Source of the DNA: Takakia lepidozioides
Lineage: Eukaryota; Plantae; Bryophyta
Direction: 5' to 3'
Assembly (NCBI GenBank): GCA_030704615.1
Contig: CM060734.1
Coordinates: 12,028,001-12,092,000 of the forward strand
DNA: 64,000 nucleotides
Part shown: positions 794-64,000 of the stretch, in pieces
Position numbering within the stretch: the first letter of the stretch is position 1
Layout: the number at the start of each line of letters is the position of its first letter
Position numbers and translations under genes: made by a program
Notes under the pieces: model-generated
Databases searched by the model: none
The model's input: only the letters and a program-made list of their open reading frames with translations
Told to the model about the DNA's origin: nothing

Positions 794-1519
794 TGTCGCG
801 GCCCTTTGCCTTAAGGGCAGGGGGTCGGGACACGTGAGGGGCTGCCCCTGTGGTGGGGGCAGTGGCAACATTAGTTGTGGGGGCTGAAGCACCCTTGAGT
901 GCCCAAGGCACTCAAGGAGGCGGAGGCGCTCACTAGGTGGAGCCCCGCACACCGGGTTGCGGTGGGGGTGGTTCCACAAGGGGTGGTGATAGCTTAGTGG
1001 GACTTAGTGGGGGTGGCATAGGACTCACCATGGGGGCGGGGACCTTGTGGTGGGAGTCGTGGGGAGTCTTGGGACTCATCACGGTCCAATGGGACTGTGG
1101 TGGGTGGGCCAAGAGTCACCGCGACTCATCACCGGGAATCGAGGGTTTTTGTGGTGGTTCGCCATAAAATGGCATGGTTGTTTGTGAAACCCCCGCGGAT
1201 AGTCACAGAAGTATATATAGGGAGTAGTAACCCCGAGAACGGTGCAAGCCCGTTGGTGTCCAAAAACTAGTGAGTAAGCGTGTGAGCTGGAAAGCGACCA
1301 AGGTGTGGGGAGCTATTCCGGACTGCCATCGACCAAAGGGAATTTCCACTAGACCCAAATTGGGAGAGGGTCTTGTGGAGGAGTAAAGGGGGACCGTTAT
1401 GTCCCGGTGAGCAGCCGAAGCTCCGAGTTGGCCTGGCGGCCAGTTAGGGAGTTAGGCGCGCGCATCAAAGCGAGTAACTATGACTTGAAGGGGAGCTTAC
1501 CGAAGTGAGGTGCGCGACA
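794..1519 (+). repeat. 5' LTR
   Basis: Begins TGTCGCGG and ends GCGCGACA. About 21 substitutions versus the 3' LTR by eye (~97% identity). TATA-like GTATATATAG at ~1211. Confidence 0.95.
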
Positions 1520-1521
1520 CT

Positions 1522-1533
1522 TGGTATCAGAGC
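1522..1533 (+). promoter_or_regulatory. Primer-binding site (initiator tRNA-Met)
   Basis: TGGTATCAGAGC two nt after the 5' LTR; canonical plant tRNA-iMet PBS. Confidence 0.93.
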
Positions 1534-1574
1534 TTAGAGTTCAGTACGCGATCGTCCTTGGGATCGGCCTCATC

Positions 1575-4500
1575 ATGGGGTCGGGCAAGTCAAAGCGAAA
1601 GCGGAACGGCCCGAAAGATGATGCTCCTGATGAGCCCGATGGGGGGATGTGTCACCGAAGCGGCCATTTGAGGAAGCAATTCATGCCTTTGGAAGTGAGG
1701 CCGCTCAAGGATAGGAGGAATCTGAGGAGTCGGAGCCCGAGGAATTCCTGAGAGCTCCGACAGACCAACAGATGCCTCCTATGCCAGCATCCTTTTGGGA
1801 AGGGTTGTTGGCGCAATTTGGCGGGACGTTGAAAGACGTGTTGAAGGCGGCTAATGCCACTTCCACTAAGACAAAGTTTAAGGTGAAGCCTAAGGAACCT
1901 GACACCTTCAAGGGCGTCTGAAATTGGAAGGCACTCAACACCTGGCTCTTGGAGCTAGAGCAGTACTTCCGGGCGGCCAAGTTGAGTGACGAGGATCGGG
2001 TGGAAGTGGCTCCAACCTATTTGAGGGGCTATTCTCAACAATGGTGGCAGAAATGCCTTCACGACCGAGGTCCAAACCCAGAATCCTTGAATTGGGGTGG
2101 GTTCAAGGAACTTATGAAGAGACAGTTTGTGCCCATCAACGCGTCCTGGCTCGCCTGGGTCAAGATGAGGAATTTGAAGCAAACGGATGACATCCGGGGA
2201 TATGTTCAGGCTTTCAATGTGCTGTTGCTCGAAGTCGCAGACATGGCAGAACTAGAAATGGTCTTCAACTTTGTGGCGGGACTGGCCCCATGGGCCAGGC
2301 GGAAGTTGGAGGAGAAGCCACTTAAGACTTTGAACGAGGCAATTGAAAGGGCTGAATGTTTCTCGGATGTCCCTAGGGGCGAAAGGCAAGGCCGTACGGA
2401 GCTGAACCACAAGAAGGTCCGGTGGGAGGGTGACTCCTTCCAACCGGAAAAGAAGTGGGATAGGCCACGCGGCGACAATGGCACATGGAAATCGAAAGGA
2501 GGGCCCTCACACGTCAAGACGGCACCCGGTGCCTCGAAAGGAAAACCAGGTGCGACGGCTTATGGCGGGCAGAAGGCGACCTTCGATGGAGTGTGCTTTA
2601 ATTGCGGGGAACCCGAGCACATGGCCAAAAAGTGCGCGAAACCCCGACAATTGAACATGACTCGGGCAACCACGGAGTTGTCCAAGGATTCCATTAGCCG
2701 CTTGGTGGAGGCAGTGGTTGCCAAGACTTGCAAGGTAGGCAACTACTCTTGTGAGTTGTACCAGGAAACTGGCGCCCTGCGCAAAGGGAGTCAGTTATTG
2801 TTCGTGAGTGGGATAATTTCCGGAACTAACATGTCGTTGTTGGTGGACACAGGAGCGTCACACTCCTTCATGACACCGGCAACGGCACGGAAGCTGGGAC
2901 TCCCGACAAGTGAAGGGGGGGCTTCTATTGAGGTGCGTTCTGCTAAAGGAGAACCACAATTGGCGACGAGGTTGGCATTCAATGTTCCTCTTCAGCTCGG
3001 GAGTTGGGAGGGACGTGAGAACTTCACCATTTGCAAGATCGATGGAGTGGATCTCATTTTGGGGATGACCTTTTTGAGCAAATCAGGAGCGGTCATAGAT
3101 GGCCGCAAGAGAATAGTCACGCTACTGTGTGGGAATGGTGGCGAAGTTTTAAGAGTGTCGGAAACGCCCAACCCAGTGGGAGGGCGAATAAACCTATTGT
3201 CAGCAAAAGAGTGGGCCGTGGAGGAGCAACACGAGCCCCAATTTTTGCTCTACGTAAGACAAGTGAAGGGAGAAGGCGATGGGGAGCCGAGCCCATATTG
3301 GATCAAGGGGATTTTGGAGAAATATCAGGATGTGATGCCGGAGGATTTACCAAGCGGCTTGCCACCGCGAAGAGGAGTTGACCACAAGATTGAGGTGATA
3401 CCGGGATCGGCGCCGCCTGCCAAGGCGCCCTACTGGTTGAGCCACAAAGAGTTGGTCGAGCTGAAGACTCAGCTCAAGGATCTAATGTCAAAGGGGTACA
3501 TCCGGCCGAGTAAGTCACCTTACGGAGCCCCGGTGTTATTCGCGGATAAAAAGGACGGGACGCTGCGGATGTGTGTCAATTACAGGGCTCTGAATAAGGT
3601 GACTATCAAAAACCGATACCCTTTGCCGAGGATCGATGACCTCTTCGATTGGTTGGCAGGAGCGAAATATTTCAGCCGGATCGATTTGCGCTCCGGGTAT
3701 CAAAGTATGTGAGAATTTTTGCCAAGATCGCGGGGCCGCTGTCAGACCTCCTGTGTAAATCCAAAGTCTGGGTATGGAACACCTTTTGTGGCCAAACTTT
3801 TGCCGAGTTGAAGCAGTGGATGACGGAAGCTCCAATCCTAAAAATCCCGGAGTTCGATCGCCCATTTGAGATTCATACAGATGCGTAGGACTTTGTGATT
3901 GGAGGTGTACTCATGCAGGATGGACGTCCAGTGGCTTACGAAAGTAAGAAACTGAATGAAGTGGAGCGGCGGTGGCCAACGCACGAGAAAGAGATGAAGG
4001 CAGTGGTGCATTGCCTTGAGCTTTGGCGCCACTATGTTGGTTCCAACCCAGTGAAGGTGTTCACGGACAATGTCACGGTGAAGTATTTTGTCACGCAACC
4101 TAAGTTGTCCCCAAAACAACTTAGGTGGCAAGACACTTTGGCGGTGTTCGACGTGGATATCCAGTACAAACCGGGACGAAACAATGCGGTGGCCGATGCT
4201 TTAAGTAGAAAGCAGCAGCTCATGTTAGTGTACAAGGGCGAGAATGCGCTCCAGAGGAAGATCCGGAAGGCTTATCGGAAGGATGAGATGGCGAAGTCCG
4301 TGATGCGGGACTTGAGGATGGGGGTTAAATCGCAGTTCCACTTGCAAAATGGACTACTCCGGTACAAGCAAAAGCGTCTCTACGTGCCGAAGGGAGGGAT
4401 CAGAGATAGTCTTTTGAGAGAATGCCATGATGGTCCGCTTGCGGGCCACGGTGGAGCCAAGCGCACTGCAACACTCTTGAAAAAAGAGTATTTTTGGCCC

Positions 4501-5628
4501 AAACTCAGGGAGGAGGCCGAGGAGTATGTCAAGACATGCACCACATGCCAACAAAACCGGAGTGAGTACAAAAAGCAAGCGAGGCTGTTACAACCCTTGC
4601 CGATTCCAGAGGGGTCTTGGGAAAGTGTCTCGATGGACTTCATGACTATTATGCCGCTGTCAAAAGGATTCGATGCAATCATGGTGGTGGTGGATAGATT
4701 CAGTAAAATGGGCCATTTCATCCTCACCAAGGAGACGACAACGGCGCAGGAGACGGGACGACTTTACTTCGCCCACGTCTTCAAGCATCATGGACTCCCG
4801 AAGGATATTATCTCGGACCGCGATCCAAAGTTTACTAGTAAATTTTGGAGGGTACTTTGGAAGAAAATGGGGACGAGGCTCAAAATGAGCACCGCCTTCC
4901 GACCTACAATGGACGGCCAAATGGAAAGGGTGAATTCCGTGGTGAAACAGATCTTGCGGAATTACGTGTCGGCGGATCAATCGGACTGGGTGGAGCACTT
5001 GGATGCGGCAAAGTTTTGTTATAATAACACAAAACACTCCGCAGCGGGAGTTTCCCCTTTCGTATTGGTCTATGGAAAAGCACCTCTGGTGCCGACAAGT
5101 TGGGCCGCCCAAGACGTTGAGGAACCGGCAGCAGTGGCAGTGCTGGAAGAACGCGAGTGTTTGTTGAAGCTCGCAAAGTACAACATTGCCAAAGCTAGGA
5201 AACGGTATGAACGGCAGGCGAATCGGAAGCGGAGGGGGGTTAAGTTTGAGGCAGGCATGGAGGTCTGGTTGAACATCAAGAATTTTGACTACCATTCTTG
5301 AATCTCTTCGACTTAAGCAGTGCCTCCACCTCGTACTCAGGTTCATTTTCATGATCCAACAGCACAGGTGGCGGACGCAACACTTGATGCCGATTCGGAC
5401 GCGCTTCATCTTTAAAGTAAGGCTTCAAAAGGGAGACGTGGAATACCGGATGCACCTTGCTGTTTGCTGGCAGCTCCAATTCATACACACCCTCATTCAT
5501 AACCTTCCGGATGCGAAAGGGTCTTGCGTACGAAGGTACGAACTTGGGTGCGTGCCTTAGAAATGGGAAACGAATCTGAGGCGGTTACAACTTTTGAAGG
5601 GCGACCTCAAAAGCGGAAGAAGCGTTGA
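1575..5628 (+). pseudogene. gag-pol polyprotein, disrupted
   Basis: Gag with [14 protein letters not shown] knuckle; protease [10 protein letters not shown]; RT start to IDLRSGYQ, then deleted; RNase H EIHTDA*...YESKKL; integrase H2C2 plus SMDF/SDRDPKF/DGQME core; GPF/chromodomain segment inverted at ~5290-5560; stops and frameshifts. Confidence 0.92.
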
Positions 5629-6534
5629 TGGGGACATCAACCTTGGATCGTGGGGGAGGAAATGCATGCTTAGCCCGACTTAGCTAGCTCAGGAATCCGA
5701 TTGCAAAAACTTGTATTGTACAAATTTTGTTATAAATGAAATGGTTTCCAAATGTAGTGCGTCCTATTTTGTTTGGAATGGTGATGCATGGTATGATTGG
5801 CTAGTGTGTAGAATGCATGCTAAGCTTACAAAGTGGGAGAGGTAAATTGGATTAATCGTGTGTTTGTGTAGTGCCGAAATCGGGCGACTCCCACCCAAGG
5901 GGCAAGGAAACTTGCACCTTCGTTGGGAGTTCACGTGCTAGTGCGCACCTGGCGCGTGCGCGTACTATAACTGCGCTACCGAGGGGGTTGCCTTGTAGTG
6001 CGGGCTAACGCGGAAGCTACGTGCTTCTGTTCACGTACTATAATCGTGTAACCTCGGGACGAAGTCGTAGTGCGGCTTCGGCGTGTTCCCGTACCTCAGG
6101 CCAGCATTCCAAGGCGGACCCAATTGTAGTGATTGGGGCGCACGGTTGGTTCAAGGTTATCTTCCTAGTAAAAAAGGGTTCAAGGCGAACCCTTGCTCAA
6201 GGTGATGCCAAAAGCGACATAACGAGCGGTCGCAAGCAAATGTTGTTGCAGTAAGGCGATTCGATCCTCGGGGAGCATCGTTCATTGGCCCTGAAGTGGG
6301 TCAAGAAGAGTGCACTGGGAGGAGCTTGAGAGGCTCCACCCTTGGCCGGGACTTGGAGGAAGTCGGCCGAACTAGCTAGTGGAGAGTAGAGTCAAGTGGG
6401 GGTTTGGTTCTTAGCCATGGGACGCCATGGTGTGGAAACAAACTCCTTGATGTGGGACGCCACAACTTGGGATGTTCGTTTCTACAAAATGGACAAGTCG
6501 ATGAGGACATCGACTCCCTGTTGGTAGGGGTGTG

Positions 6535-7260
6535 TGTCGCGGCCCTTTGCCTTGAGGGCAGGGGGTCGGGACACGTGAGGGGCTGCCCCTGTGGTGGGGG
6601 CAGTGGTACCATTAGTTGCGGGGGCCGAAGCACCCTTGAGTGCCCAAGGCTCTCAAGGAGGCGGAGGCGCTCACTAGGTGGAGCCCCGCACACCGGGTTG
6701 CGGTGGGGGTGGTTCCACAAGGGGTGGTGATAGCTTAGTGGGACTTAATGGGGGTGGCATAGGATTCACCATGGGGGCGGAGACCTTGTGGTGGGAGTCG
6801 TGGGGAGTCTTGGGACTCATCACAGTCCAATGGGACCGTGGTGGGTGAGCCAAGACTCACCGCGACTCATCACCGGGAATCGAGGGTTTTCGTGGTGGTT
6901 CGCCATAACATGGCATGGTTGTTTGTGAAACCCCCGCGGATAGTCACAGAAGTATATATAGGGAGTAGTAACCCCGAGAACGGTGCAAGCCCGTTGGTGT
7001 CCAAAAACTAGTGAGTAAGCGTGCGAGCCGGAAAGCGACCAAGGTGTGGGGAGCTATTCCGGACTGCCATCGACCAAAGGGAATTTCCACTAGGCCCAAA
7101 TTGGGAGAGGGTCTTGTGGAGGAGTAAAGGGGGACCGTTATGTCCCGGTAAGCAGCCGAAGCTCCGAGTTGGCCCGGCGGCCAGTTAGGGAGTTAGGCGC
7201 GCGCATCAAAGCGAGTAACTATGACTTGAAGGGGAGCTTACCGAAGTGAGGTGTGCGACA
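6535..7260 (+). repeat. 3' LTR, preceded by a PPT-like tract at ~6521-6534
   Basis: Direct repeat of 794-1519; ends GTGCGACA followed by the GGAGA TSD. Confidence 0.95.
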
Positions 7261-9599: not shown

Positions 9600-10390
9600 C
9601 TTCAACATATGGGAAATGCTAGCTGGAAACAGTGTGCGGCACCGCACACTATTTCAGCCCGTCATCATTGTTCTTTTTCTCTTTGAAATGTAGGCACTTA
9701 GCACATTCTTTCAGGCTACACTCACACTGAAATGTCAGCACTGTTTGTGCCCCTCTTCACTTCCGTTTTTTGCTTCAAAATGTACCCCTCCAGGAGTGTC
9801 TTACAGGCATGAATCAAACCGCACGAAACAGTGTGCGGCACCGCACACTGTTTGTGCCCCCCTGAAACAATCGTATTCGTTTGAACTTTGGCCCCCAACT
9901 CCTCTGTTTGAGTCCAGTCACCTCTGTGTATCCCCCTTGAATCACATTGAAATGCATGATGGAAACAGGGCTTGAATCATATGGAAATGCAGGCTGGAAA
10001 TAGTGTGCGGCACCGCACACTGTTTGAGCCCATCATCAATGTTCTTTTTTTCTTTCAAATGTAGGCACTTAGTACACTCTTTCAATCTTCAGCCACACTG
10101 AAATGTTAGCATGGAACAGTGTGCGGCACCGCACACTGTTTGTGCCCCTCTTTACTTTCGTTTTTTTTGCTTCGAAATGTACCCCTTCTGCATTGAGTTA
10201 AAGGCCTGAATCACACCAAAATGGAACCACAAAACAGTGTGTGGCATCGCACATTGTTTGTGCCCCCCTCAAACAATCGTTTATAGCCCCCAGGTCCTCT
10301 TTTAGAGTTCACTCACCTCTGTGTATCCCCCTTGAATCATATTGAAATGCATGCTCTAGACAGTGTGCGGCACCGCACACTGTTTGTGAG
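9600..10390. repeat. ~370-bp tandem duplication carrying six palindromes ACAGTGTGCGG-CA-CCGCACACTGT
   Basis: Palindromes at ~9629, 9828, 10001, 10116, 10234 (degenerate) and 10360; 9600-9970 is repeated at ~9975-10350. Confidence 0.85.
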
Positions 10391-10502
10391 GTAGTACATC
10401 AAAGGATGACAGTGCAATGTGCCACCCTCACAAATGTTCTAGAGCAAGCCACAACAGAAGCCAACAAGCAGAGGGAGAGATGTGTAAAGGGAGAGATGTG
10501 TA

Positions 10503-13965: not shown

Positions 13966-14439
13966 GCACTAGAAGCATTTGTGTCTTTTCCGAATCGACT
14001 GGGTGTCCGCCAACCACTCCAGGAACCACTTGGCAGTAAGCGGGACTACTGGAGAGTCGAAACGGACAATGTGGGCCCACGGGGGCATTTCAGACGGCGG
14101 GCAGAAGCAGGGTCAACGACTCCGGAGTTGTAGCAAAAATCCGGACTATTTAATTAATTGCGTAAATACATAAAATTTGAAAAAAGCGGAAATTACAAGT
14201 GGTTCTAATTACTGCACATGCGACTATAAATTTTCATTCATAATTCGATTAATGGAATAAAGATATTTATTCATTAAAGTGAATATGTAGTCAACTCAAC
14301 TACTCCATGAACCACTGCGCATTGATTGCACCCGTGATTCGGGGCCACATTTGCTGACGTGTGTTTCACAAGAACAGGCAAACAAAATCTAGCCTTTGGG
14401 GGCTTGCATATTTTAATATGTACTGCCTCCACCTGGAAG

Positions 14440-17400
14440 TGACATGGAAGGTCCATGGTGACATCGTGAAAGCTGGAATTGTAGGGTTTGCCATTCTGAA
14501 CACCGCCATGGTGGACATGTATGCCGAATGCGGGAGCATTGAAGATGCAAAAGTAGTGTTCGACTGTGGCTCAACGAGATGTGGTGTCGTGGAGTGCGAT
14601 GATCGCATTGGCAGCAAGGCAAGGATGTATGCATGATTTGAGCAGAGGCAGTGATAGCTGAAGGAGCAGGATAGAGTGTGGGTCCATATTCATCTAAGAG
14701 GGTCGGATTTCAAGCTCCAGATTACATATAGATCCCTGTGGAAGGATAACTACAAGAAACCTCCATGGGTAGATGGTTAGCTGGAAGCGGCAGCTGTAGC
14801 GGCACAGTTGATAAAATCAGGCACCTCAACCATGACCACAGCTTCTGGAAGAGGATCAAGAGAGGGAGTCCACAATGCCTCTTCTGGCACTTATGGGCAT
14901 GTGAAGATGCTTTATGAGGCAGGCAGACTGAAAGAGGCTCTACAGATTTTAAACCAAAGAGGCATTTCAGCAGATGTAGATACGTATGTGTGTCTTGCCT
15001 AAGTGCATCAAGATGAAAGGCCTAGAAGTTGGAAAGCAAGTGCACACTCACATTGTCCAAAGTGGATTCACACCGAACGTTTTTCTACTCAACAACCTTG
15101 TCAACATGTATGTTATCATGGATGATCACCAAGTGTTCAACACAGAATGCTCAACGATCTTTGATCACGTGGAATATAATGTTGGCAGAATTACCAAGCA
15201 TGGGCGTGGTACGAATGCTTTGGAGACCTGTGAGCAAATGATGCGCGAAGGGGTGGAGCCCAACCACATCGCATTTGTATGTGAGCTGCCAGGGCAGTGT
15301 TCAGATTGACATTTGGTACAATTCCAGCTTTGATGATATCCCCATGCACCTCTTTGCGTTTCTCCAGGCCGGCTGCCAGGCTTGCACAAGCATAGCGAAT
15401 GCACACAACCATGATGTGCTTCCCCCATCATTTGCTCATAGGTCTCCAAAGCCTCCATTCCACATCCCTGTTGTGCATACCCTGCAAGCACATCATATCG
15501 CACTCCATGACACCACATGTCGTTCAGCCATAGTGTCGAACACTCCCTTTGTATCCTAGATGCACCCACATTTTGCAAACATGTCCACCAGGGTATTGTT
15601 CAGAATGTCATTTGGTACAATTCCAGCTCTAAAGATGTCGCCATGCACCTCTTTCCCCATTTCCAAAGCTGCCAGGGCAGTGTTCAGATTGACATTTGGC
15701 ACAATTCTAGCTTTGATGATATCCCCATGCACCTTTTGCTTTTCTCCAGGGCTGCCAGGCTTGCACGCACATTGCAAATGCACACAAACATGATGTGCTT
15801 CCCCCATCATTTGCTCATAGCTCTCCAAAGCCTCCATCCCACGTCCCTGCCGTGCATACCCTACAAGCATCGCACTCCACGACACCACATCTCGTTCAGC
15901 CATAGTTTCAAACACTCCCTTTGCATCCTAGATGCACCCACATTTTGCAAACATGTTCACCAGGGTATTGTTCAGAATGACATCAGGTACAATTCCAGCT
16001 CTGCAGATGTCGCCATGGACCTCTTTCCCCTTTTCCAAAACTGCCCAGGGCAGTGTTCAGATTGACATTTGGCACAATTCTAGCTTTGATGATATCCCCA
16101 TGCACCTTTTGCTTTTCTCCAGGGCTGCCAGGCTTGCACGCACATTGCAAATGCACACAAACATGATGTGCTTCCCCCATCATTTGCTCATAGCTCTCCA
16201 AAGCCTCCATCCCACGTCCCTGCCGTGCATACCCTACAAGCATTGCACTCCACGACACCACATCTCGTTCAGCCATAGTTTCGAACACTCCCTTTGCATC
16301 CTAGATGCACCCACATTTTGCAAACATGTTCACCAGGGTATTGTTCAGAATGACATCAGGTACAATTCCAGCTCTACAGATGTCGCCATGGACCTCTTTC
16401 CCCTTTTCCAGAGGTGCCAGGGCAGTGTTCAGATTGACATTTGGCACAATTCCAGCTTTGATGTCCCCATGCACCTATTGCCCTTCTCCAGGGCTGCCAG
16501 GCTTGCACAAGCATTGCAAATGCACACAAACATGATGTGATTCCCCCATCCTTTGCTCATAGCTCTCCAAAGCCTCCATCCCACGTCCTTGCCGTGCATA
16601 CCCTACAAGCATCGCACTCCACAACACCACATCTCGTTCAGCCATAGTGTCGAACACTCCCTTTGCATCCTAGATGCACCCACATTTTGCATACATGTCC
16701 ACCAAGGTATGGTTCAGAATGACATTTGGTACAATTCCAGCTCTGAAGATGTCGCCATGGACCTCTTTCCCCTTTTCCAGAGGTGCCAGGGCAGTGTTCA
16801 TAATGACATTTGGTAAAATTCCAGCTTTGATGATACCCCATGCACCTCTTTGCCCTTGTCTAGGGCTCAATGCACCCACATTTTGCATACATGTCCACCA
16901 GGATATGGTTCAGAATGACATTTGGTACAATTCCAGCTCTGAAGATGTCGCCATGGACCTCTTTCCCCTTTTCCAGAGCTGCCAGGGAGGTGTTCATAAT
17001 GACATTTGGTACAATTCCAGCTTTGATGATACCCCATGCACCTCTTTGCCCTTGTCCAGGCTCGATGCACCCACATTTCGCATACATGTCCACCAGGGTA
17101 TGGTTCAGAATGACATTTGGTACAATTCCAGCTCTGAAGATGTCGCCAAGGACCTCTTTCCCCTTTTCCAGAGCTGCCAGGGCAGTGTGCAGAAGGACAT
17201 TTGGTACAATTCCAGCTTTGATGATATCCCCATGCACCTCTTTGCCCTTGTCTAGGGCTGCCAGGCTTGCACAAGCATTGCAAATGCACACAAAGTGGCC
17301 GGGCTTCACCCCCTCCCCCATCATTTGATCATAGGTCTCCAAAGCCTCCATCCCACATCCCTGTTGTGCATACCCTGCAAGCATCACACTCCACAACACC

Positions 17401-18115
17401 ACATCTCGTTCAGCCATAGAGTCGACAACTCCCTTTGCATCCTCAATGCATCCACATTTGGCATACATGTCCAGGTCAGGGCAGTGTTCAGAATGACATC
17501 TGGTGCAATTCCAGCTTTGACCGATGTCACCATGGACCTCGTTCCCCTTTTCCAGGCTTGCACACGCATTGCAATTTGGAAAAGGGGAAAGAGGTCCACA
17601 TGGCGACATCTTCAGAGCTGGACTTGTACCAAGGTGAATGCCTGTCAGATTACCAGATGCAAAGAGGTGCATGGTTGCATCGCCAAAGGCAGCAGCTGCA
17701 GCGGCACAGTTGATAAAGTCAGGCACCTCAACCATGACCACAGCTTCTGGAAGAGGATCAAGAGAGGGAGTCCACAATGCCTCTTCTGGCACTTATGGGC
17801 ATGTGAATATGCTTTGTGAGCTGAAAGAGGCTCTACTGACTTTAAACCAAGGAGGCATTTCAGCAGATTCAGATACGTATGTCTGTCTCTTGCATAAGTG
17901 CATCAAGATGAAAGGCCTTGAAGCTAGAAAGCAGGTGCACACTCACATTATCTAAAGTGCATGCCAAAAAAATTTCTACTCAACACCCTTGTGCGGGGCA
18001 TCATGGATGCTCACCAAGTGTTCAACAGAATGCCTCAACGATCTTTCATCACGTGGAACACGATGCTTGCAGGGTGTGCACAACAGGGGCGTGGTATGGA
18101 GGCCTTGGAGAATGT
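14440..18115 (+). pseudogene. PDF-motif + PLS-class PPR pseudogene, copy A (15284-17574 inverted)
   Basis: IHLRGSDFK...SLWKDNYKKPPWVDG*LEAAAVAAQ linker, then GRLKEALQIL..., KQVHTHIVQSGFTPNVFLLNNLVNMY, VFDSMAERDVVLWSAMLAGYAQQG and LVDMYAKCGCIEDA (P-L-S motifs); many frameshifts. Confidence 0.88.
15284..17574 (-). repeat. Inverted block of tandemly amplified PPR units (~372-bp and ~195-bp periods)
   Basis: ATGCACCCACATTTTGC recurs at 15560, 15932, 16305, 16674, 16870 and ~17065; PPR motifs read on the minus strand. Confidence 0.9.
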
Positions 18116-53943: not shown

Positions 53944-54574
53944 AATGTCGAGCGGCTTTTACTCACCCATCCCTTCGCTATCCGAGGTGGAAACTCCAAG
54001 ATAGAAGAGTTGGATATCTCTAAGCACTCAGCTTGCTCAGAACAATCAGTCATGACCTACAGCTAGTGAATCATGGTTGTGCTTCCTATTTGTATTCCTT
54101 CTTGCCTTCATGTTATCAATTTACCTTACCGTGTATACTGAAGCATCAGATTGCTTCAGTATCTACTAAGTTCCAATTAATCATGCATTCATTCCACAGC
54201 TTCTCTCATGTCTCTCTACACAGTATGTTTGTATCGATTCTGTATCGGATTAAGATTAATCATGTATCATGCCTATGCCATGGTGTCCCTAATCTACCCT
54301 ATTGTATAATTTTACAGCTTGCATGAAGTAAGCCTCAATCAAGTCATCATCTCCTCTTCACTATTTCCGCTCTCTGTTACGTCTCCTCCTCTCCTGAGCA
54401 AGTCGCCCTCCTCAAGAAGTGATCCTCTTCCTGTTGCCGCCCTGCCTAATCTACCCACAAGCTGTTCTAACCACCTAACTAACTAACCGTCACCCCTGAA
54501 GTAACACGTTCCCTCTGCAGATGTCGTTCCCACACAGTCGTTCCCTGTCAATGATAACTGTTCCCCATGTACAC

Positions 54575-54880
54575 TGTGACAGGCTGTGTCAAGCTGTGCC
54601 GAGCTGTGACTGGCTGTGTAAAGTTGCGTCAGGCTGTGACTGGCTGTGCAAAGCTGTGTCGGGCTGTGTCAGACTGTGTCTGGCTGTGATAGACTGTGAT
54701 GGGCTGTGTAAAGCTGTGTCGGGCTGTGACTGGCTGTGCGAAGCTGTGTCGGTTATGTCAGACTGTATCTGGCTGTGATAGACTGTGACGGGCTGTGTAA
54801 AGCTGTGTCGAGCTGTGACTGGCTGTGCGAAGCTGTGTCGGGCTGTGTCAGACTGTGTCTGGCTGTGATAGACTATGACA
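54575..54880. repeat. 10-bp-period minisatellite (GGCTGTGTCA / TCACAGCC family)
   Basis: About 30 CTGTG-core units; the reverse-complement family recurs at 59960-60075. Confidence 0.85.
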
Positions 54881-55025
54881 AGCTGTCTACCCCCCCTAAA
54901 GCCTGTGCCTGCCACTCCTAAGGCTCCTGTTGGTCTCAGTCTACCATTCATAAGTCTGCGCAAAAATTAAGGGTACCCCACAGAACCCGTAAAAGCGTCT
55001 AAGTCCCAAGCAGCCCTCTAACACA

Positions 55026-55220: not shown

Positions 55221-56655
55221 CACGGGGGCATTTCAGACGGCGGGCAGAAGTGGGGTCAATGACTCCGGAGTCGTAGCAAAAATCCGGGCTATTTAATTAA
55301 TTACGTAAATACATAAAATTTGAAAAAGCGGAAATTACAAGTGGTTCTAATTACTGCACATGCGACTATAAATTTTCATTCATAATTTTGATTAATAGAA
55401 TAAAGATATTTATTCATTAAAGTGAATATGTAGTCGCTTCAACTACTCCATGAACCATTGCGCATTGTTGCACCCGTGATTCGGGGCCACATTTGCTTAC
55501 GTGTGTTTCACAAGAACAGGCAAACAAAATCTGGCCTTTGGGGGCTTGCATATTTTAATATGTACTGCCTCCACCTGGAAGTGACATGGAAGGTCCATGG
55601 TGACATCGTGAAAGCTGGAATTGTAGGGTTTGCCATTCTAAACACCGCCGTGGTGGACATGTATGCCGAATGCGGGAGCATTGAAGATGCGAAGGTAGTG
55701 TTCAACTGTGGCTCAACGAGATGTGGTGTCGTGGAGTGCGATGATCGCATTGGCAGCAAGGCAAGGATGTATTCATGATTTGTGCAGAGGCAGTGATAGC
55801 TGAAGGAGCAAGATAGAGTGTGGGTCCATATTCATCCAAGAGGGTCGGATTTCAAGCTCCAGATTACCTATGGATCCCTGTGGAAGGATAACTACAAGAA
55901 ACCTCCATGGGTAGATGGTTAGCTGGAAGCGGCAGCTGTAGTGGCACAGTTGATAAAATCAGGCACCTCAACCATGACCACAACTTCTGGAAGAGGATCA
56001 AGCGAGGGAGTCCACAATGCCTCTTCTGGCACTTATGGGCATGTGAAGATGCTTTATGAGGCAGCAGACTAAAAGAGGCTCTACAAACTTTAAACCAAAG
56101 AGGCATTTCAGCAGATGTAGATACGTATATGTGTCTCTTGCATAAGTGCATCAAGATGAAAGGCCTAGAAGTTGGAAAGCAGGCGCACACTCACATTGTC
56201 CAAAGTGGATTCACGCCAAACGTTTTTCTACTCAACAACCTTGTCAACATGTATGTTAAGGGGAGCATCATGGATGATCACCAAGTGTTCAACACAGAAT
56301 GCCTCAACGATCTTTGATCACGTGGAATATAATGTTGGCAGGATTACCAAACATGGGCGTGGTACGAATGCTTTGGAGACCTGTGAGCAAATGATGCGCG
56401 AAGGGGTGAAAACCAACCACATCGCGTTTGTATGTGTTTGCAATGCGTGTGCAATCCTGGAAAAGGGGAACGAGGTCCATGGTGACATCGGTCAAAGCTG
56501 GAATTGCACCAGATGTCATTTTGAGCACTGCCCTGACCTGGACATGTATGCCAAATGTGGATGCATTGAGGATGCAAAGGGAGTTTTCGACTCTATGGCT
56601 GAACGAGATGTGGTGTTGTGGAGTGCGATGCTTGCAGGGTATGCACAACAGGGAC
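55109..56655 (+). pseudogene. Segmental duplicate of 13966-15283 plus the un-inverted PPR continuation (PDF-PPR copy C)
   Basis: Closely matches 13966-15283; 56425-56655 equals the reverse complement of ~17355-17574. Confidence 0.9.
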
Positions 56656-57109: not shown

Positions 57110-58332
57110 ATTTTTTTAAATTTGGGTGGTGGCATGCACCCTCTCTATCACGCATGCTCTCTGTCAAGCAATTCGCAGCAAGGGGAGGGGGGGGGGGGGG
57201 CTGGTCGCAATGGTGCGCACAGCCACACCAGTGCACTTGGGCTTTTATTTTTTCAAATTTGGATGATGGCAGGCACCCTCTCTCTATCACCCTAGCTCTC
57301 TGTCAAGCAATTTGCAGCAATGGGGGGGCTGGCCGCGCTGGTGTGCGTAGACACCCCAGCCCACATGCGCAATTGTTTTTGGATTTTGGGTGATGTAGGC
57401 ACCCTCTCTCTCACTCACCACCTCTGTGCAGCAATTCGCAGCAACACGGGGGCTGGCGCAGCCACCCCAGCCCACATGGTTTTTTAGTTTTTTTTTTTAG
57501 TTTTTTTTAATAAATTTTGGGTGATGCAGGCACCCTTTCTCTCTCCCTCACCACCTCTGTGCAACAATTCGCAGCAACAGGGGGGTTGGCGCAGCCATTC
57601 CAGCCCACATGGGTTTTTTTTTTAAAATTTTTTTTGGGTGATGCAGGCACCCTCTCTCTCTCCCTCACCACCTCTGTGTAGCAATTCGCAGCAATAGGGG
57701 AGCTGGCGCAGCCACCCCAGCCCACATGGTTTTTTTTTATAAAAAAAATTGGGTGATGCAGGCACCCTCTATCTCTTCCTGACCAACTCTGTGCAGCAAT
57801 TCGCAGCAACAGGGGGGCTGGCGCAGCCACCCCAACCCACACGGGTTTTTTTTTTTTTTTTTTTTGGGTGATGCAGACACCCTCTATCTCTTCCTCACCA
57901 CCTCTGTGCAGCAATTCGCAGCAACAGGGGGGCTGGCGCAGCCACCCCAGCCCACATGGGTTTTTTTTTTTTTTTTTGTGATTTTGGGTGATGCAGGCAC
58001 CATTTCATCCTTCCTCACCACCTCTGTGTAGCAATTCGCAGCAACAGGGGGGTGGGCGCAACCACCCCAGCCCACAAGGGTTTTTTTTTTTTTTTTTTTT
58101 TTTGGATTTTTGGTGATGCAGGCACCCACTGTCTCTTCTTCACCACCTCTGTGCAGCAATTCGCAGCAACAGGGGGGCTGGCGCAGCCACCCTAGCCCAC
58201 ATAAGTTTTTTATTTTTATTTTTATTTTTATTTTGGGTGATGCAGGCACCCTCTCTCTCTCCCTCACCACCTCTGTCAAGCAATTCGCAGCAACGGAGGG
58301 GGCAATTCGCAGCCACCCCAGCCCACATGGTT
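57110..58332 (+). repeat. ~120-bp tandem satellite (~10 units, variable T-tracts); reverse copies at 49345-49425 and 49752-49883
   Basis: GGGTGATGCAGGCACCCTCTCTCTC...CACCACCTCTGTGCAGCAATTCGCAGCAAC...GCAGCCACCCCAGCCCACATGG repeated. Confidence 0.92.
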
Positions 58333-59830
58333 TCATCATCAGGCTCTGATTTATTTGGTGAACAAGCCTTTGATAAGTGGAATAATAGCAAGGTGGTTAA
58401 TAATCTTGCACGAGTTTGAGTTCGAAGTTGTTTACAAGCCTGGCCGTTTGCATCTTGTGGCAGATCACCTGTCACGCCTATCAACAGGAGAGCCCGCTAC
58501 AGGAGTAGACGACCAACTACCTGATGCGAGTTTGTTTGCAGTGGAGGTGCAGGGAAGTGCAGATGACTAGTTAGATTGGCAGTGGCCAATCAGATACTAC
58601 CATACTCATGGTCAGTGCCCACCTAGTTATGGAAAGGAGCAGAGGAAGAGAATTGCTATCAAGGCTTTACCTTATACTATGGTAGGGGGCAGAATGTATA
58701 AGCTAGGACCTGATGGAGTACTTAAACGATGCTTGTACCACCATGAAGTAAATAAAGTTTTGGAGGAAGTTCATAAAGGAGTGGCTGGAGGTCATTTTGG
58801 AAAAGAGACTACCAGTAGAAAGATACTACTTGCAGATTACTGGTGGCCTACTTTGTTCAAGGATGTACACAAATATTGTAAGAGTTGTGATGAGTGTCAG
58901 AGGCTAGGACCATTGCAGAGATTTGGGAAGATGGCTTTGCATCCTACGATGCTTGCTGAACCATTTCAGAAATGGGGACTAGACTTTGTTGGACCAATTA
59001 ACCCACCAGCCAAGAATACACAGAACAAGTATATAATCACAACCACTGATTATACTACAAAGTGGGTGGAAGCTAAAGCTCTGAGGGACAACACAACTAA
59101 GTCCACAGCAAGGTTCCTGTATGAGAACATACTTACAAGATTTGGCTCTCCCCTGGAATTTATCAGTGACCAGGGAAGTCACTTCATTAATGAGACCATA
59201 GAACTATTGACTAAAGAGTTCATGATTGTGCGTAGGAAGAGTACAACTTATTACCCACAGGGTAATGGGCAGGCAGAGGCTACCAACAAAATACTATGTA
59301 CTATCTTGGCTAAGATAGTCAATGCAAACAAAATAGATTGGGATACAAAGTTGTTGACGACTTTGTGGTCATACAAGACTTCATATAAAGTCACCACTAA
59401 GTATACACCATTCCAATTAGTTTTATGGTATGGAAGCTTTACTTCCAGTGGAGTTCTTGTTACCTACCATGAGAACGGAATGGGGAAGGAGAATGGAATT
59501 GGAAGATTCAATTAAGGTCAGGAAACATGAATTATATCATGTGGAAGAAGTACGTGCTGATGCAGCAGATAACATGACCATAATTCAGATTAAGAGGAAG
59601 GATCAATTTGATGAAGGTAAACTGAAAACTTTTAAGACGGGTGATTTGGTTCTATGGTTGCAGAAGAAGGGGAAGATTAAGGCTTCTAAGCTTAAATCAC
59701 CATGGAAAGGACCTTATGTCATATAGAAGATATATGATAACAACATCGCCATGTTACAAACCATTAACAAAGAGATGTTGGGAAGAGTCAATGCCAATAA
59801 GTTGAAAGGATACAGTGGTATCCACGACAA
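58333..59830 (+). mobile_element. 3' half of a non-chromovirus Gypsy pol (RNase H end + integrase)
   Basis: HQALIYLVNKP...RWLIILHEFEF; HKGVAGGHF...YWWPTL...CDEC; WGLDFVGP, SDQGSHF, GNGQAE; WKGPY; one stop and one frameshift. Confidence 0.9.
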
Positions 59831-61491
59831 ACCATTGCAACACGATTTGCATATTGAAACACAGACACAGTCACGGGCTGCACCGGTAATACCAACGGAG
59901 CATGAAGCACTTGTCGTAAAGCCGAATGTGTATGGCCTGAGCGGAGAACACGGGTGTTCGCACAGTTATCACAGCCCACCATAGCATCACACAGCCTATC
60001 ACAGCCCATCACAGTGTCACACAGCCTATCACAGTCCACCACAGTTAGACACAGCCCATGCGGGTTACACAGTCCATAGGGTCAGTGACAGGTGGACGCG
60101 GGTTAACGTCAGAAAAGTGGCCGTCAAGTGAAAGAGAAGTTTGGAAGTCAAACTCGGAGAATGTGCCACGCAAACAGGGGAAGTCAGAGGCATGTCTAAA
60201 AACGAACACGTGGTCACTAGGGCGAAGCACACCGCTGTGCATAAATTATAGAAGTGGGTATCATCATGCAAGAGAACAAATCGGGCCGTCAAAGTACCTA
60301 CCCGGTACATCAGCCAAAACTATTTGTGGGCCCATTAATTCATTCGGGGCAGGGGTAACGGAACCCTTTCCGAGTACAGAAAAGAGGGATTTTTACCACA
60401 TGTGCTGTCCTACTGGACATTCCAGGTGGGAATGTCCACGGAGGGGGAAAGAATTAAAAAGTTACCCATGCAGGCAACAGCCAATCAGGAGCGAGAATTT
60501 CATGCAGGTGGTTCCCTCCAAGAAACAAGAACAAGAAATCGGAAGAGTTATGAGCGGAAGAGTCGAGGTGGCTCTGAATAGCCCGTGTCTCGACGGGAGG
60601 GGCAATCAAAGCTATAGCTTTGTAGCTATGGCGGATATAACGGATTACACGCTCGCTTTACTACTCACGCAGTGGCGCAAGGACGAACGAATTGAGAGTA
60701 CATTCTCTCTCACTCGATACTTGCAAGCCCCACAGGCTTACACGGGGGAATGCTTGCGCGTGAGCCTGTGAGCCTATGAGCCTGGCTAGGCTCACGCCAC
60801 GTCAGCAATCATCCACGTGTGCAGGTCCTAATTCCGTGCTCCCCCCCCCCTAATTACCGCGGATCAGTTGTCGCCTATGTCCCTTTCATCGCCACCACAT
60901 GAATATTCTTTCCGACCGAGAACAATGGTAGGTTTGTGGATGGTTTAGGATCGAGGACATGATTTTTGAATGAGGAGATCGTCCGCTAGAGAATTGAATA
61001 TTAACAGCAAACCCTTTTTTTTGCAAAGTAGTTCATTCATTCCAACCCACAAACATTTTTCAATGTTGGAATCTGAAGACCTACCCCAGGCAATCCCTAA
61101 CTGTACTTACGGGAACGCGCGAAGATCTTGAAAAATGAACTACTTCCAGAGTCTGCAGCAATATCATCTATGAACACAGCAACCCCTCCTTGACGTTTTT
61201 TTCCTCCGCGACCCCCATGGAGAGGCGAATGCATTGTTTGTTGGGACAACACCCGTGCGCAAGCTTCCGCGTAAACCGGCAAGCGGTAAGCTCTAGGGGG
61301 ACTCGGGGACATGTAGTATCCTTGGAAACCGAAAGGTGTCCGCGTATTCGATGACACCTGCCGAACTCTGGAAAGCAAGAAGAGGAATGGTGGTAGATGT
61401 TATCATCCAGAAATAGACAATGTAAGCAACCATCTGTCGAACGGGAATGACACAATGAAATGCAACATATTTTGCACGACTAGAGCCGAAC

Positions 61492-63227
61492 TTACTCACA
61501 CTCAAAATCGGAGTCCACGTCGAGATCCTCGTCAGGCGCTTTGGGCTCCTCAAGAAGTCCCTCCGTGGATGGGGCAGAAGTAGTGCCCGACTCAAGCTGA
61601 TGAAGCTCACTTGAGAAGAGCTCCGTATCAGCCTCCATGCCGAAGAAGTGCCTTCCGGCGCTTTTGCACGCATGAAAAGATGCTCCTGCAAATCGAAGAT
61701 GAACGAGAAATCAGAACATGGCTTCCCTAAGCTCACTGCCCACATTTCAAACACAGTGTTGAGGGCCCCACCTGTTCCCATAGACAAGTCAACCACTCGT
61801 CCACCGTGACGGCTGCATGTCTCCACCAAAAGTCTGCATGAAAGATGGGGATTTCTCCCGTGCACCTCTCCAAGGGATACCAGTCGACCTTTTTGTGGTA
61901 TGACCCGAGTCCACGTAATTGAAGATTACATCATCCTCCACAGGCTCGCAGGTGGGGTCAATGTGAGCTGCAAGGTCCCTCAACTGGAACTCAGCAATAC
62001 CAGGAGGAAGAGTGTCCTTACGCACCCTCGCCAGGCACAAAGCTTCGAACACCCGAGTCTGTCAATAATCACGAAGAGAGCATGAGGCAAAAGACAAAAC
62101 CAACTTTTGACATGTACATCAGAACTACTTTAATTCAAAGGAACAACTCACTTTCGGCCCCGGGAACTCGCCCTTCGTAAGAGGCAGAGTGTTGATGCAT
62201 GTCCAAGTTTTGATGACACGAAACCCGGAAGCTTTCATGTAGCTGAAAAGAGTTCTTCGTGCCGACATGTCATTTGACTGCATGAAAAGAAGAGCCCCCG
62301 AGTCAGAAAGGAATTTGCTGCTGAATGAGAAGGCCCACTGCCAGTAACGAGAATCCGATTTGTTCCAAGTGGGGGTTGAATTGGAAGGCAACACATCAGG
62401 GACAGGGAAACCGTCAGGAATGTCCAGCACCACAAGGTCAGTCGCGTATGCCTGCTGAACTCCATTCACCCAATCCGGCCTTTTTGTGACCTATAGCCAA
62501 AAACAGGAGACAGTGTCACAAGCCCAATCTTGATCCAACAGGAAATCAATCCCATCGACAAGCCAGAACAAGTTGCCAAAACAAAATTATTCACACAACA
62601 GTTAAGACATATGTGCTTACCTGAGTGAAGAACAAAACAAGCATGTCCCATGATTTCGAGGGCACCCCTTTGAATGTCGACTTCCTGGATTCCATCATTG
62701 CCAGAAAACTTTCATTCACCACCTTACGATGGAACTGGCCCAAAACCCTGGATGGATGTTCTCTCGCATCGAAAGGTTGCTCCCTCGACTTTGCTGTTCT
62801 CTTATCCCTCCTAGTTGGAGAAGGCTGTCTTTCAGCGACCTCTGACGGGCCCTGTTCCTGCGGAGCTGCACTCTTCCCCTTCCCCTTCGGATCCCCGGCA
62901 ATCTTCCCCTTCCGTTTTGGAGTAGCAGATTTCTCAGGCTCTTTTGCAGCCAGAGCAGCAATGATTCTGTCCTGAATGTCTTTGTCAGCCAGTGGGGCAA
63001 ATGCCACGGCGTTGTCGTTAAGGTTTCTCAAAACAACTTCATCGAATGGTGTGTCCTGTTTTGGTAGATCGAGGTACCACCCACAGTCTCTGAAGTGCGC
63101 CCTGCTCCAGTCTCTGGCAATACCAGCCGTGTACATTGTCTTGTCATTGGAGGGGTCAGCCCACGAGTAGATGAAGTCTGGGTCATTGCTAAGGTACTTT
63201 CTCGGTATGAGGACATGATACATATAC
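61492..63227 (-). pseudogene. Spliced beta-class amino-DNA methyltransferase (N6-adenine/N4-cytosine family) gene, 3' exons, one frameshift
   Basis: Exons ~63227-62621, 62490-62152, 62058-61772 and 61686-61492 with GT-AG introns in compatible phases. Catalytic-position motif DLVVLDIPDG precedes REKS...RVVDLSMGTGASFHACKSAGRHFFGMEAD (motif I onward). One extra T at ~61830. 5' end not found. Confidence 0.8.
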
Positions 63228-63354
63228 CTCAATGACACACACACCCAAAATCTAGACAGTCAATCGATCTGATCAGGACACAGATCACACATCACGAGAA
63301 GTGTATTGGCATGCAGGTCAGTAACACTGATAAACCAACGTTTGAAAGCCCGAT

Positions 63355-64000
63355 TCAACATTGCGTTGACGCAATGTTGATTCGAGCTGAAATGGAAAAC
63401 ACCAAATTTGGAGAACTGCACTTTCAACAAGCACGTACGAGATGGAAAGCCCATTATCCTAAAACATCTCATGCACAACATTGGAACCCCAATCAACCTT
63501 GCGTTGACGCAAAGAAGATTGACGGATACACCTATGATAATGTAGCATTGAAAGAGACAGTGCTTGGCAACGGAATTCAACATTGCGTCAACGCAAGGTT
63601 GTTTTCATTAACAGAGGAAATGGAAAACAGTGATTGAAAACCACCATCCGAATATCTGTTGGTATGGATATTCAACCTTGCGTTGACGCAAGGTTGAATT
63701 CCTCTGTTGAAACAACTGTCCAGGGTATTTTTGATAACCTTAACTTTCCTACAATTGTATGGAAATCGGGGTATTTTGGCAGGATTAATCTAGCAATCCA
63801 TACCGTCAAACAATGTTGCGTCAACGCAAGGCTGTTTGATGGTACAGTGTAAGCTCTAAACAACATTTCAAACAGACTCCAAACCGACTTTAAGTTCATC
63901 CTGGCAGCATTGCAACTGGAAACCACAAAAAAAACAGCCCAAGAACAAAGGAAAACCTACACAGCCAGGCCCTTCATCAACCTTGCGTTGACGCAAGGTT
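63355..64000. repeat. Array of six ~26-bp palindromes (TCAACCTTGCGT-TG/CA-ACGCAAGGTTGA) with unique 55-140-bp spacers
   Basis: Copies at 63355-63380, 63493-63514, 63577-63601, 63670-63699, 63806-63839 and 63977-64000 (runs off the window). Confidence 0.9.

Follow-up and report, generated by a model that had tools for sequence, protein, structure and literature searches.

A methyltransferase-like gene of Takakia lepidozioides as the probable cargo of high-copy DNA transposons in non-seed land plants

Introduction

What is a spliced gene with the features of a bacterial DNA methyltransferase doing among the transposon fragments of a bryophyte genome? The question is raised by a stretch of 64,000 nucleotides of Takakia lepidozioides (GenBank assembly GCA_030704615.1, contig CM060734.1, positions 12,028,001 to 12,092,000 of the forward strand), referred to below as the window and numbered from its own first base, which breaks off within such a gene. 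On the minus strand, at 61492-63227, four phase-compatible GT-AG exons encode a DIPDGF motif upstream of a KSP...VVDLSMGTGAS...GRHFFGMEAD block. A preliminary description of the sequence had reported an intron-containing gene of four phase-compatible exons, at coordinates that proved exact, and had taken it for a bacterial-type N4-cytosine/N6-adenine (N4C/N6A) DNA methyltransferase carried by a Gypsy retrotransposon. We find that what the window contains is the 3' two-thirds of a plant gene, spliced and coding for a product with the fold of a bacterial DNA amino-methyltransferase. The gene probably belongs, as an accessory ('cargo'), to a DNA transposon family that is present in many copies in non-seed land plants and has palindrome arrays of its own.

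Results

A predicted amino-methyltransferase fold with an altered catalytic loop

The window exons were scanned one by one, and the evidence of fold and profile comes from natural relatives in which the domain is uninterrupted, not from the window's own product; phmmer searches of the PDB with single window exons gave chance matches only. An exhaustive HMMER search with a 121-aa reading of the second exon recovered 144 cluster representatives at E<1e-3, mostly exon-sized open reading frames (ORFs) of plant contigs but with some long proteins, including two 'hypothetical proteins' of Ceratodon purpureus. A profile of this family matched the beta-class N6-adenine methyltransferase CcrM in the PDB (6PBD; E 5.7e-4, collinear over profile positions 15-200), aligning the family's DLiiaDiPeglp on DLIFADPPYNL. 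When one long relative was modelled with AlphaFold (P0039:300-590; pLDDT 77, pTM 0.75), Foldseek placed CcrM (1.2e-7), M1.HpyAVI, M.BceJIV and M.PvuII on top and MT-A70 enzymes next, and all 10 of 10 structural neighbours of the model in the ESM Atlas were PF01555 clusters (TM 0.53-0.55 by query). P0039 itself scored 20.8 bits on PF01555, under the gathering cut-off of 26.7 bits; a closer relative, L013:18071-19099, which retains DIPDG and ..DLSVGTGASFHAAKESERHIFGFEAD, scored 30.6 bits (E 4e-7, profile positions 1-216 of 221). Phage DNA-methyltransferase families match the motif X-I region of the relatives, equivalent to the stretch encoded by the last exon of the window copy. Searching phages by tblastn with the L013 methyltransferase domain gave no match, a search of metagenome contigs with the window exon gave no confirmed relative, and word-index protein searches returned three proteins from P0039 and three from the N-terminal ORF.

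PF01555 enzymes are characterized by a motif IV of the form (D/N/S)-P-P-(Y/F/W) and a motif I of the form D-x-F-x-G-x-G, followed by R-x-x-x-G-x-E. The window copy has the permuted order of this family (N6_N4_Mtase), with motif IV before motif X and motif I, and its motif I region, VVD-L-S-M-G-T-G-A-S ... G-R-H-F-F-G-M-E-A-D, keeps the PF01555-type elements that bind S-adenosylmethionine (SAM). In long relatives these elements (the acidic D, the second Gly and R..F/A.G/L.E.D) are invariant. Because the CcrM profile match, Foldseek, the ESM Atlas, the phage families and the L013 score on PF01555 agree, we assign the predicted fold, the permuted order and the SAM-binding motifs to N6_N4_Mtase: the C-terminal domain has a permuted beta-class amino-methyltransferase fold of PF01555 type in which the SAM-binding motifs are well kept. 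The beta-class N6A/N4C fold proposed in the preliminary description is thereby borne out, by way of the L013 match to PF01555 and the AlphaFold and Foldseek results for P0039.

The catalytic loop is a different matter. Across about 130 cluster representatives, the place of DPPY is taken by D-hydrophobic-P-[E/D]-[G/N], followed by L-P-V-P, with D in 108 of 129, P in 108 of 132 and E or D in 110 of 134, and with a hydrophobic residue, not proline, at the second position. The fourth position is E in 72, D in 38, K in 9, S in 6 and N in 5 of them and is never aromatic, and the W-N downstream of the loop is nearly invariant. The DIPD noted earlier in place of DPPY does stand in the window copy; it is no mark of decay of that copy, being a conserved motif of a family under purifying selection (see below).

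What this loop means for activity can be argued in two directions, and the odds that methyl transfer has been kept, as opposed to a role as a DNA-binding or base-flipping module only, appear about even. One explanation is that the family protein is a catalytically dead pseudo-enzyme that methylates no base, its domain being kept as a DNA-binding or dimerising scaffold in the manner of METTL14 or MTA9-type partners. The aromatic residue of motif IV has become Glu or Asp and the first Pro hydrophobic in about 80% of the 130 representatives, the first glycine of motif I varies among relatives, and most family members fall under the PF01555 cut-off, all of which would suit such a protein. However, strong conservation extends to the replacement motif itself, long relatives show no variation in the SAM-binding elements whereas the cofactor pocket is usually the first thing lost in pseudo-enzymes, and the ratio of nonsynonymous to synonymous substitution rates (dN/dS) in the methyltransferase-like domain is 0.04. 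We give the pseudo-enzyme somewhat less than an even chance. At the other end, the family proteins could actively modify DNA in a SAM-dependent reaction, their unusual loop lending them a chemistry or a target unlike those of known N6A/N4C enzymes; brought by their N-terminal domain to the palindromes of their own element, they would let land-plant DNA transposons write a private mark other than 5-methylcytosine to escape or redirect host silencing. That full scenario we consider rather unlikely.

An abundant and spliced family, apparently under selection

Contigs of public sequencing runs were aligned on 61300-63400. One of the runs, a low-coverage DNA run of the same organism (X1), contributed 652 contigs at 85-100% identity over 2.1 kb, and we therefore regard the family as high-copy. 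Within the window itself tblastn found no further copies of the gene, and in public assemblies the 217-aa ORF of the window had no exact match on record.

The joints expected of spliced transcripts occur in two other runs, X7 and X8, which we guess to be RNA. An X7 contig lacks exactly the intron at 62491-62620 (minus strand, GT..AG, 130 nt, phase 0; joint 62488>62619, cut +2), and that at 61686-61771 (minus strand, GT..AG, 86 nt, phase 1) is removed exactly in both X7 (61685>61773) and X8 (61684>61771); neither joint was seen in the DNA run X1. Between these two lies a third intron, at 62059-62151 (minus strand, GTGAGT..CAG, 93 nt, phase 0), which is predicted from sequence only: the exons on either side of it are collinear with the uninterrupted relative L013:18071-19099, and no contig of the runs guessed to be RNA covers that stretch. 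The gene is thus spliceosomal, and its members are spliced at two of the three predicted introns and are apparently expressed, if X7 and X8 are the RNA we take them for.

The methyltransferase-like domain forms one uninterrupted ORF in L013:18071-19099 and is divided by introns in the window (61492-62490). The intron at 61686-61771, directly after ..TG, has a position common to many relatives, whose ORFs stop or read through there. Since the domain is uninterrupted in L013 and interrupted in the window copy, and many other relatives have the intron after ..TG, the transposon family has evidently gained or lost introns.

Two relatives that come from different samples and are 82% identical in amino acids gave a dN/dS of 0.05 overall and of 0.04 in the methyltransferase-like part, values that can safely be read only as 'far below 1' because synonymous sites are saturated in this pair. 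This comparison indicates a family that is functional and under strong purifying selection.

The carrier is probably a DNA transposon rather than a Gypsy element

The preliminary description had made the gene the antisense cargo of an adjacent Gypsy long terminal repeat (LTR) retrotransposon, in which antisense introns would survive retrotransposition. An integrase ORF is indeed present on the plus strand at 58679-59515 (PF17921 and PF00665), convergent with the gene and about 2.0 kb from its stop codon, close to the 1.7 kb originally given, and the region is rich in Gypsy fragments. However, this ORF stands alone as a fragment, after a tandem repeat and a pentatricopeptide repeat (PPR) fragment, and no direct repeat of at least 60 nt brackets the gene within 43-64 kb. 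The sequence of other copies departs from that of the window copy just past the stop codon, and relatives in moss and other plants adjoin a DDE-type transposase-like gene, with no reverse transcriptase neighbour. We regard the Gypsy reading as close to refuted. The survival of antisense introns through retrotransposition need not be invoked, since the transposase that relatives adjoin is of DDE type and not a reverse transcriptase. Of the earlier proposal it is the mobile-element cargo that stands, while the Gypsy carrier, with no LTR pair, an isolated integrase and relatives next to a MULE-like transposase gene, does not.

The relatives point instead to a DNA transposon. In Ceratodon, a block of at least 15 kb occurs at two loci on different chromosomes, with about 99% identity between them. 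Besides the methyltransferase-like gene the block includes, on the opposite strand, all or most of a 714-aa ORF, partway through which the second locus begins. Homologues of this ORF make up 130 clusters, many of which have tens of members; by its language-model features it matches MULE transposase clusters (0.95), and the ORF that follows the transposase-like ORF bears a sub-threshold SWIM finger in three independent loci. The same pairing recurs in two ENA contigs, L011 and L013, where the transposase-like gene lies head-to-head with the methyltransferase-like gene, 5-8 kb apart; L013 contains a second full copy.

A domesticated host gene, that is, a plant writer of N4-methylcytosine (4mC) or N6-methyladenine (6mA) like Marchantia DN4MT1 that merely lies among transposons, would also be spliced, show signs of expression and evolve under purifying selection, and Marchantia demonstrates that land plants have a bacterial-type N4C methyltransferase (bioRxiv 10.1101/2021.02.12.428880). 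Such a gene would not be expected in 652 DNA contigs at 85-100% identity in one low-coverage run, in copies of at least 15 kb that are 99% identical on two moss chromosomes, or in recurrent linkage to a high-copy transposase-like gene, nor with a frameshift in the window copy, and we judge this explanation highly improbable.

One of the moss loci has a different transposon as its neighbour: L001:19932-23378 is a hAT transposase gene (DUF659 and hAT dimerisation domain) with GC-rich repeat arrays around it, lying just outside the shared 15-kb repeat and forming a separate element.

Palindrome arrays accompany the gene

Six palindromes with 12-nt arms and a 2-nt TG/CA centre, spaced 84-167 nt apart, form an array at 63355-64000, within the intron that precedes the first visible exon; the array runs off the window. 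Their 14-nt core matches 6 times in this interval against 0 expected (100 shuffles). Other lineages have arrays of their own in or beside the gene, built of CTGTCGGATCCGACAG in L004, AGCTCGTGCACGAGCT in L011 and TGTGCGCTAGCGCACA in L013, together with an imperfect one in Ceratodon; the L004 array has the same placement as that in the window, the intron that precedes the exon encoding the C-W-Y-L-E region.

The window contains one other array of such design, at 9600-10411, with six different palindromes (11-nt arms ACAGTGTGCGG / CCGCACACTGT, 2-nt centre, spacing 116-199 nt) whose arms resemble the L013 palindrome TGTGCG..CGCACA. By tblastn, neither the methyltransferase-like gene nor the N-terminal domain has a relative close to it. 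This second array may be the remnant of an element of this kind, or a non-autonomous relative of one.

Relatives also show what the 5' part of the gene encodes. Their first 170 or so residues form a conserved domain in which P-L-C-R, V-R and G-N-H-R are invariant; for the window copy this domain would lie beyond the window. The G-N-H-R stretch has a ParB-like match in PHROG at E 0.15, and the Atlas feature matches of the domain include one ParB_N cluster at 0.92, in a list led by DUF3723.

The window copy is most likely dead

Three of the exons can be read through without difficulty. The first visible exon (62621-63227, minus strand, 202 aa) is preceded by an AG at 63229-63228 and encodes a conserved pre-linker region (..DCGWYLDLP..) and then a Lys/Gly-rich linker; it is collinear with six relatives (P0034, P0165, P0008, P0026, P0104 and P0039), and an X7 contig spanning 62762-63229 ends at its acceptor. 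The second (62152-62490, minus strand, 113 aa) supplies the N-terminal half of the methyltransferase-like domain, with DLVVLDIPDGF, in which the motif IV variant DIPD occupies 62413-62424, and then P-T-W-N and the ..SDSGALLF.. strand. The last exon (61495-61685, minus strand) encodes ASFHACKSAGRHFFGMEAD..., with the rest of motif I, ..GRHFFGMEAD.. and an acidic tail, ends in a stop codon at 61492-61494, and is 65% identical to L013 over 23 aa. Beyond it, the 3' untranslated flank (61300-61491, minus strand) has only 61300-61339 in common with a transcript-like contig of another copy: an X7 contig here shows a joint 61339>61500 with 28 other letters, loose ends lie at 61486-61500, and the contigs aligned on 61300-63400 show the sequence of other copies departing from that of the window copy just past the stop codon.

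The third visible exon (61772-62058, minus strand) is the defective one. It encodes WRGAREKSPSFMQT, then, after a slip of frame, LVETCSRHGGRVVDLSMGTG, with ..WRGAREKSP.. in the motif X region and ..VVDLSMGTG at the start of motif I. It is 287 nt long where 286 nt would suit the phases of its two introns, and one extra base stands in a four-base run at 61828-61831. One letter at 61828 is absent from the contigs of other copies (in X7, in X8 and in about half of the X1 DNA depth), so the +1 frameshift is real relative to the family; both the exon length and the other copies thus bear out the frameshift that had been reported in this four-base run. It makes the window copy most likely a dead one.

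The frameshift could instead be an assembly error in a four-base homopolymer, leaving the window copy intact and functional. No other defect appears among the 474 visible codons, and the extra letter at 61828 is lacking from about half of the DNA depth. That depth, however, stems from many paralogous copies and is uninformative on the window locus, four-base runs are seldom miscalled in modern assemblies, and the 3' flank of the window copy differs from expressed copies too; we think an assembly error quite unlikely. As a broken relic, the window copy is of little consequence in itself. Its value is as one more dated member of the family, and in showing cleanly how the exons are arranged and how the palindrome array sits in an intron.

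Other features of the window

The window also contains remains of other repeats. A Gypsy element at 794-6834 has 300-nt direct repeats (794-1093 and 6535-6834, 97% identical) around gag-protease-reverse transcriptase and RNaseH-integrase ORFs. Gypsy fragments also occur at 23.4-24.2 kb, 38-43 kb and 50.7-53 kb, the last of these being gag on the minus strand. The isolated integrase ORF follows directly on a tandem repeat at 57356-58351, which consists of eight units of about 120 nt. A segmental duplication pairs 14326-15283 with 55468-56436 at 96-98% identity and includes PPR-repeat coding sequence; the ORF at 56172-56753 matches PF01535 and PF13041. Nested direct repeats of 84 nt and about 370 nt lie under long ORFs on both strands at 15283-17465, and a simple repeat block with a 10-nt period occupies 54547-54919.

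Discussion

The gene at the end of the window is best explained as transposon cargo: its relatives travel in blocks with a transposase-like gene, they are abundant, and they come with palindrome arrays in or beside the gene. In the mechanism that we propose, the N-terminal domain would bring the protein to the element's own palindrome array, the SAM-binding methyltransferase-like domain would then act in cis on the DNA or chromatin of the transposon, and the element might in this way be marked or shielded from host silencing.

Several points weigh against this explanation, or against parts of it. The first concerns the carrier: the 5' part of the gene, and any transposase of the window copy, lie beyond base 64000, so that context is inferred from relatives and from copy number, and one transposase locus (L012) has no linked methyltransferase-like copy. 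The MULE assignment comes from language-model features and a weak SWIM match, Pfam having returned no MULE match for the moss transposase-like ORF. Second, X7 and X8 are only guessed to be RNA. Third, in Pfam no window exon reached a threshold when scanned alone, as is expected of fragments of 27-202 residues. Fourth, the ParB-like nature of the N-terminal domain could not be confirmed: the domain found no match in Pfam (E up to 5), in NCBIfam or in two PDB profile searches, and its AlphaFold model, built from four sequences, failed (pLDDT 39). Finally, a (D/N/S)-P-P-(Y/F/W) motif IV is found neither in the window copy, which has D-I-P-D, nor elsewhere in the family, where the replacement is itself conserved; with the canonical catalytic motif absent, methyltransferase activity may have been lost.

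The closest parallels to a cargo gene of this kind come from algae. Accessory genes of a comparable ParB-methyltransferase type were predicted in 2025 from transposons of algae; Sola1-1 of Ectocarpus has an accessory protein with a ParB-like and an N4C/N6A methyltransferase part, encoded on the strand opposite the transposase. The land-plant family resembles them, by description, as an accessory gene of a DNA transposon that lies opposite the transposase strand and has a bacterial-type N4C/N6A domain, which in the algal case was proposed by the authors to bind and modify its own element. It differs in its land-plant host, its transposase, which is MULE-like in place of Sola, and its D-hydrophobic-P-[E/D]-[G/N] loop, and in that the ParB-like part is unconfirmed here. 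In red-algal Plavaka elements, PAG2 combines PF01555 with SET, PAG3 combines a ParB-like domain with a 2OG oxygenase, and tandem inverted-repeat arrays lie beside PAG3 (bioRxiv 10.1101/2025.02.11.637652). Again the cargo of a transposon includes a PF01555-type domain and a putative ParB-like DNA binder, with inverted-repeat arrays inside the element; in Plavaka, however, methylase and ParB-like domain belong to two different proteins, each combined with other partner domains, and an EnSpm/Plavaka element is the carrier, whereas the land-plant family has one spliced gene in which no SET or 2OG domain was detected.

Other likenesses are of the domain alone. The bacterial enzymes CcrM (6PBD), M1.HpyAVI (5HFJ), M.BceJIV (8URK) and M.PvuII (1BOO) share its fold, its permuted order and a similar motif X and motif I, but the plant family has about 15% identity to them, is without DPPY or SPPY, contains introns, is fused to other conserved regions and is transposon-borne. 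Among eukaryotes, MpDN4MT1a/b of Marchantia, a non-seed land plant, and N4CMT of bdelloids also have bacterial-type amino-methyltransferase domains. The likeness is again one of description: these are low-copy host genes with demonstrated 4mC activity, unlike the high-copy transposon gene with an altered loop that we describe.

We found no description of such transposon genes in land plants in the published literature, and new here are the land-plant host, the MULE-like carrier and the catalytic loop altered throughout the family. A transposon that brought along both a DNA-modifying enzyme and the sites to recruit it would amount to a self-directed epigenetic system, of a kind that has so far been predicted only, and only in algae. 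The present family has the same design in land plants, where it is old, abundant, apparently expressed and, to judge from the relatives compared, under selection, and its consistently altered loop poses a clear biochemical question.

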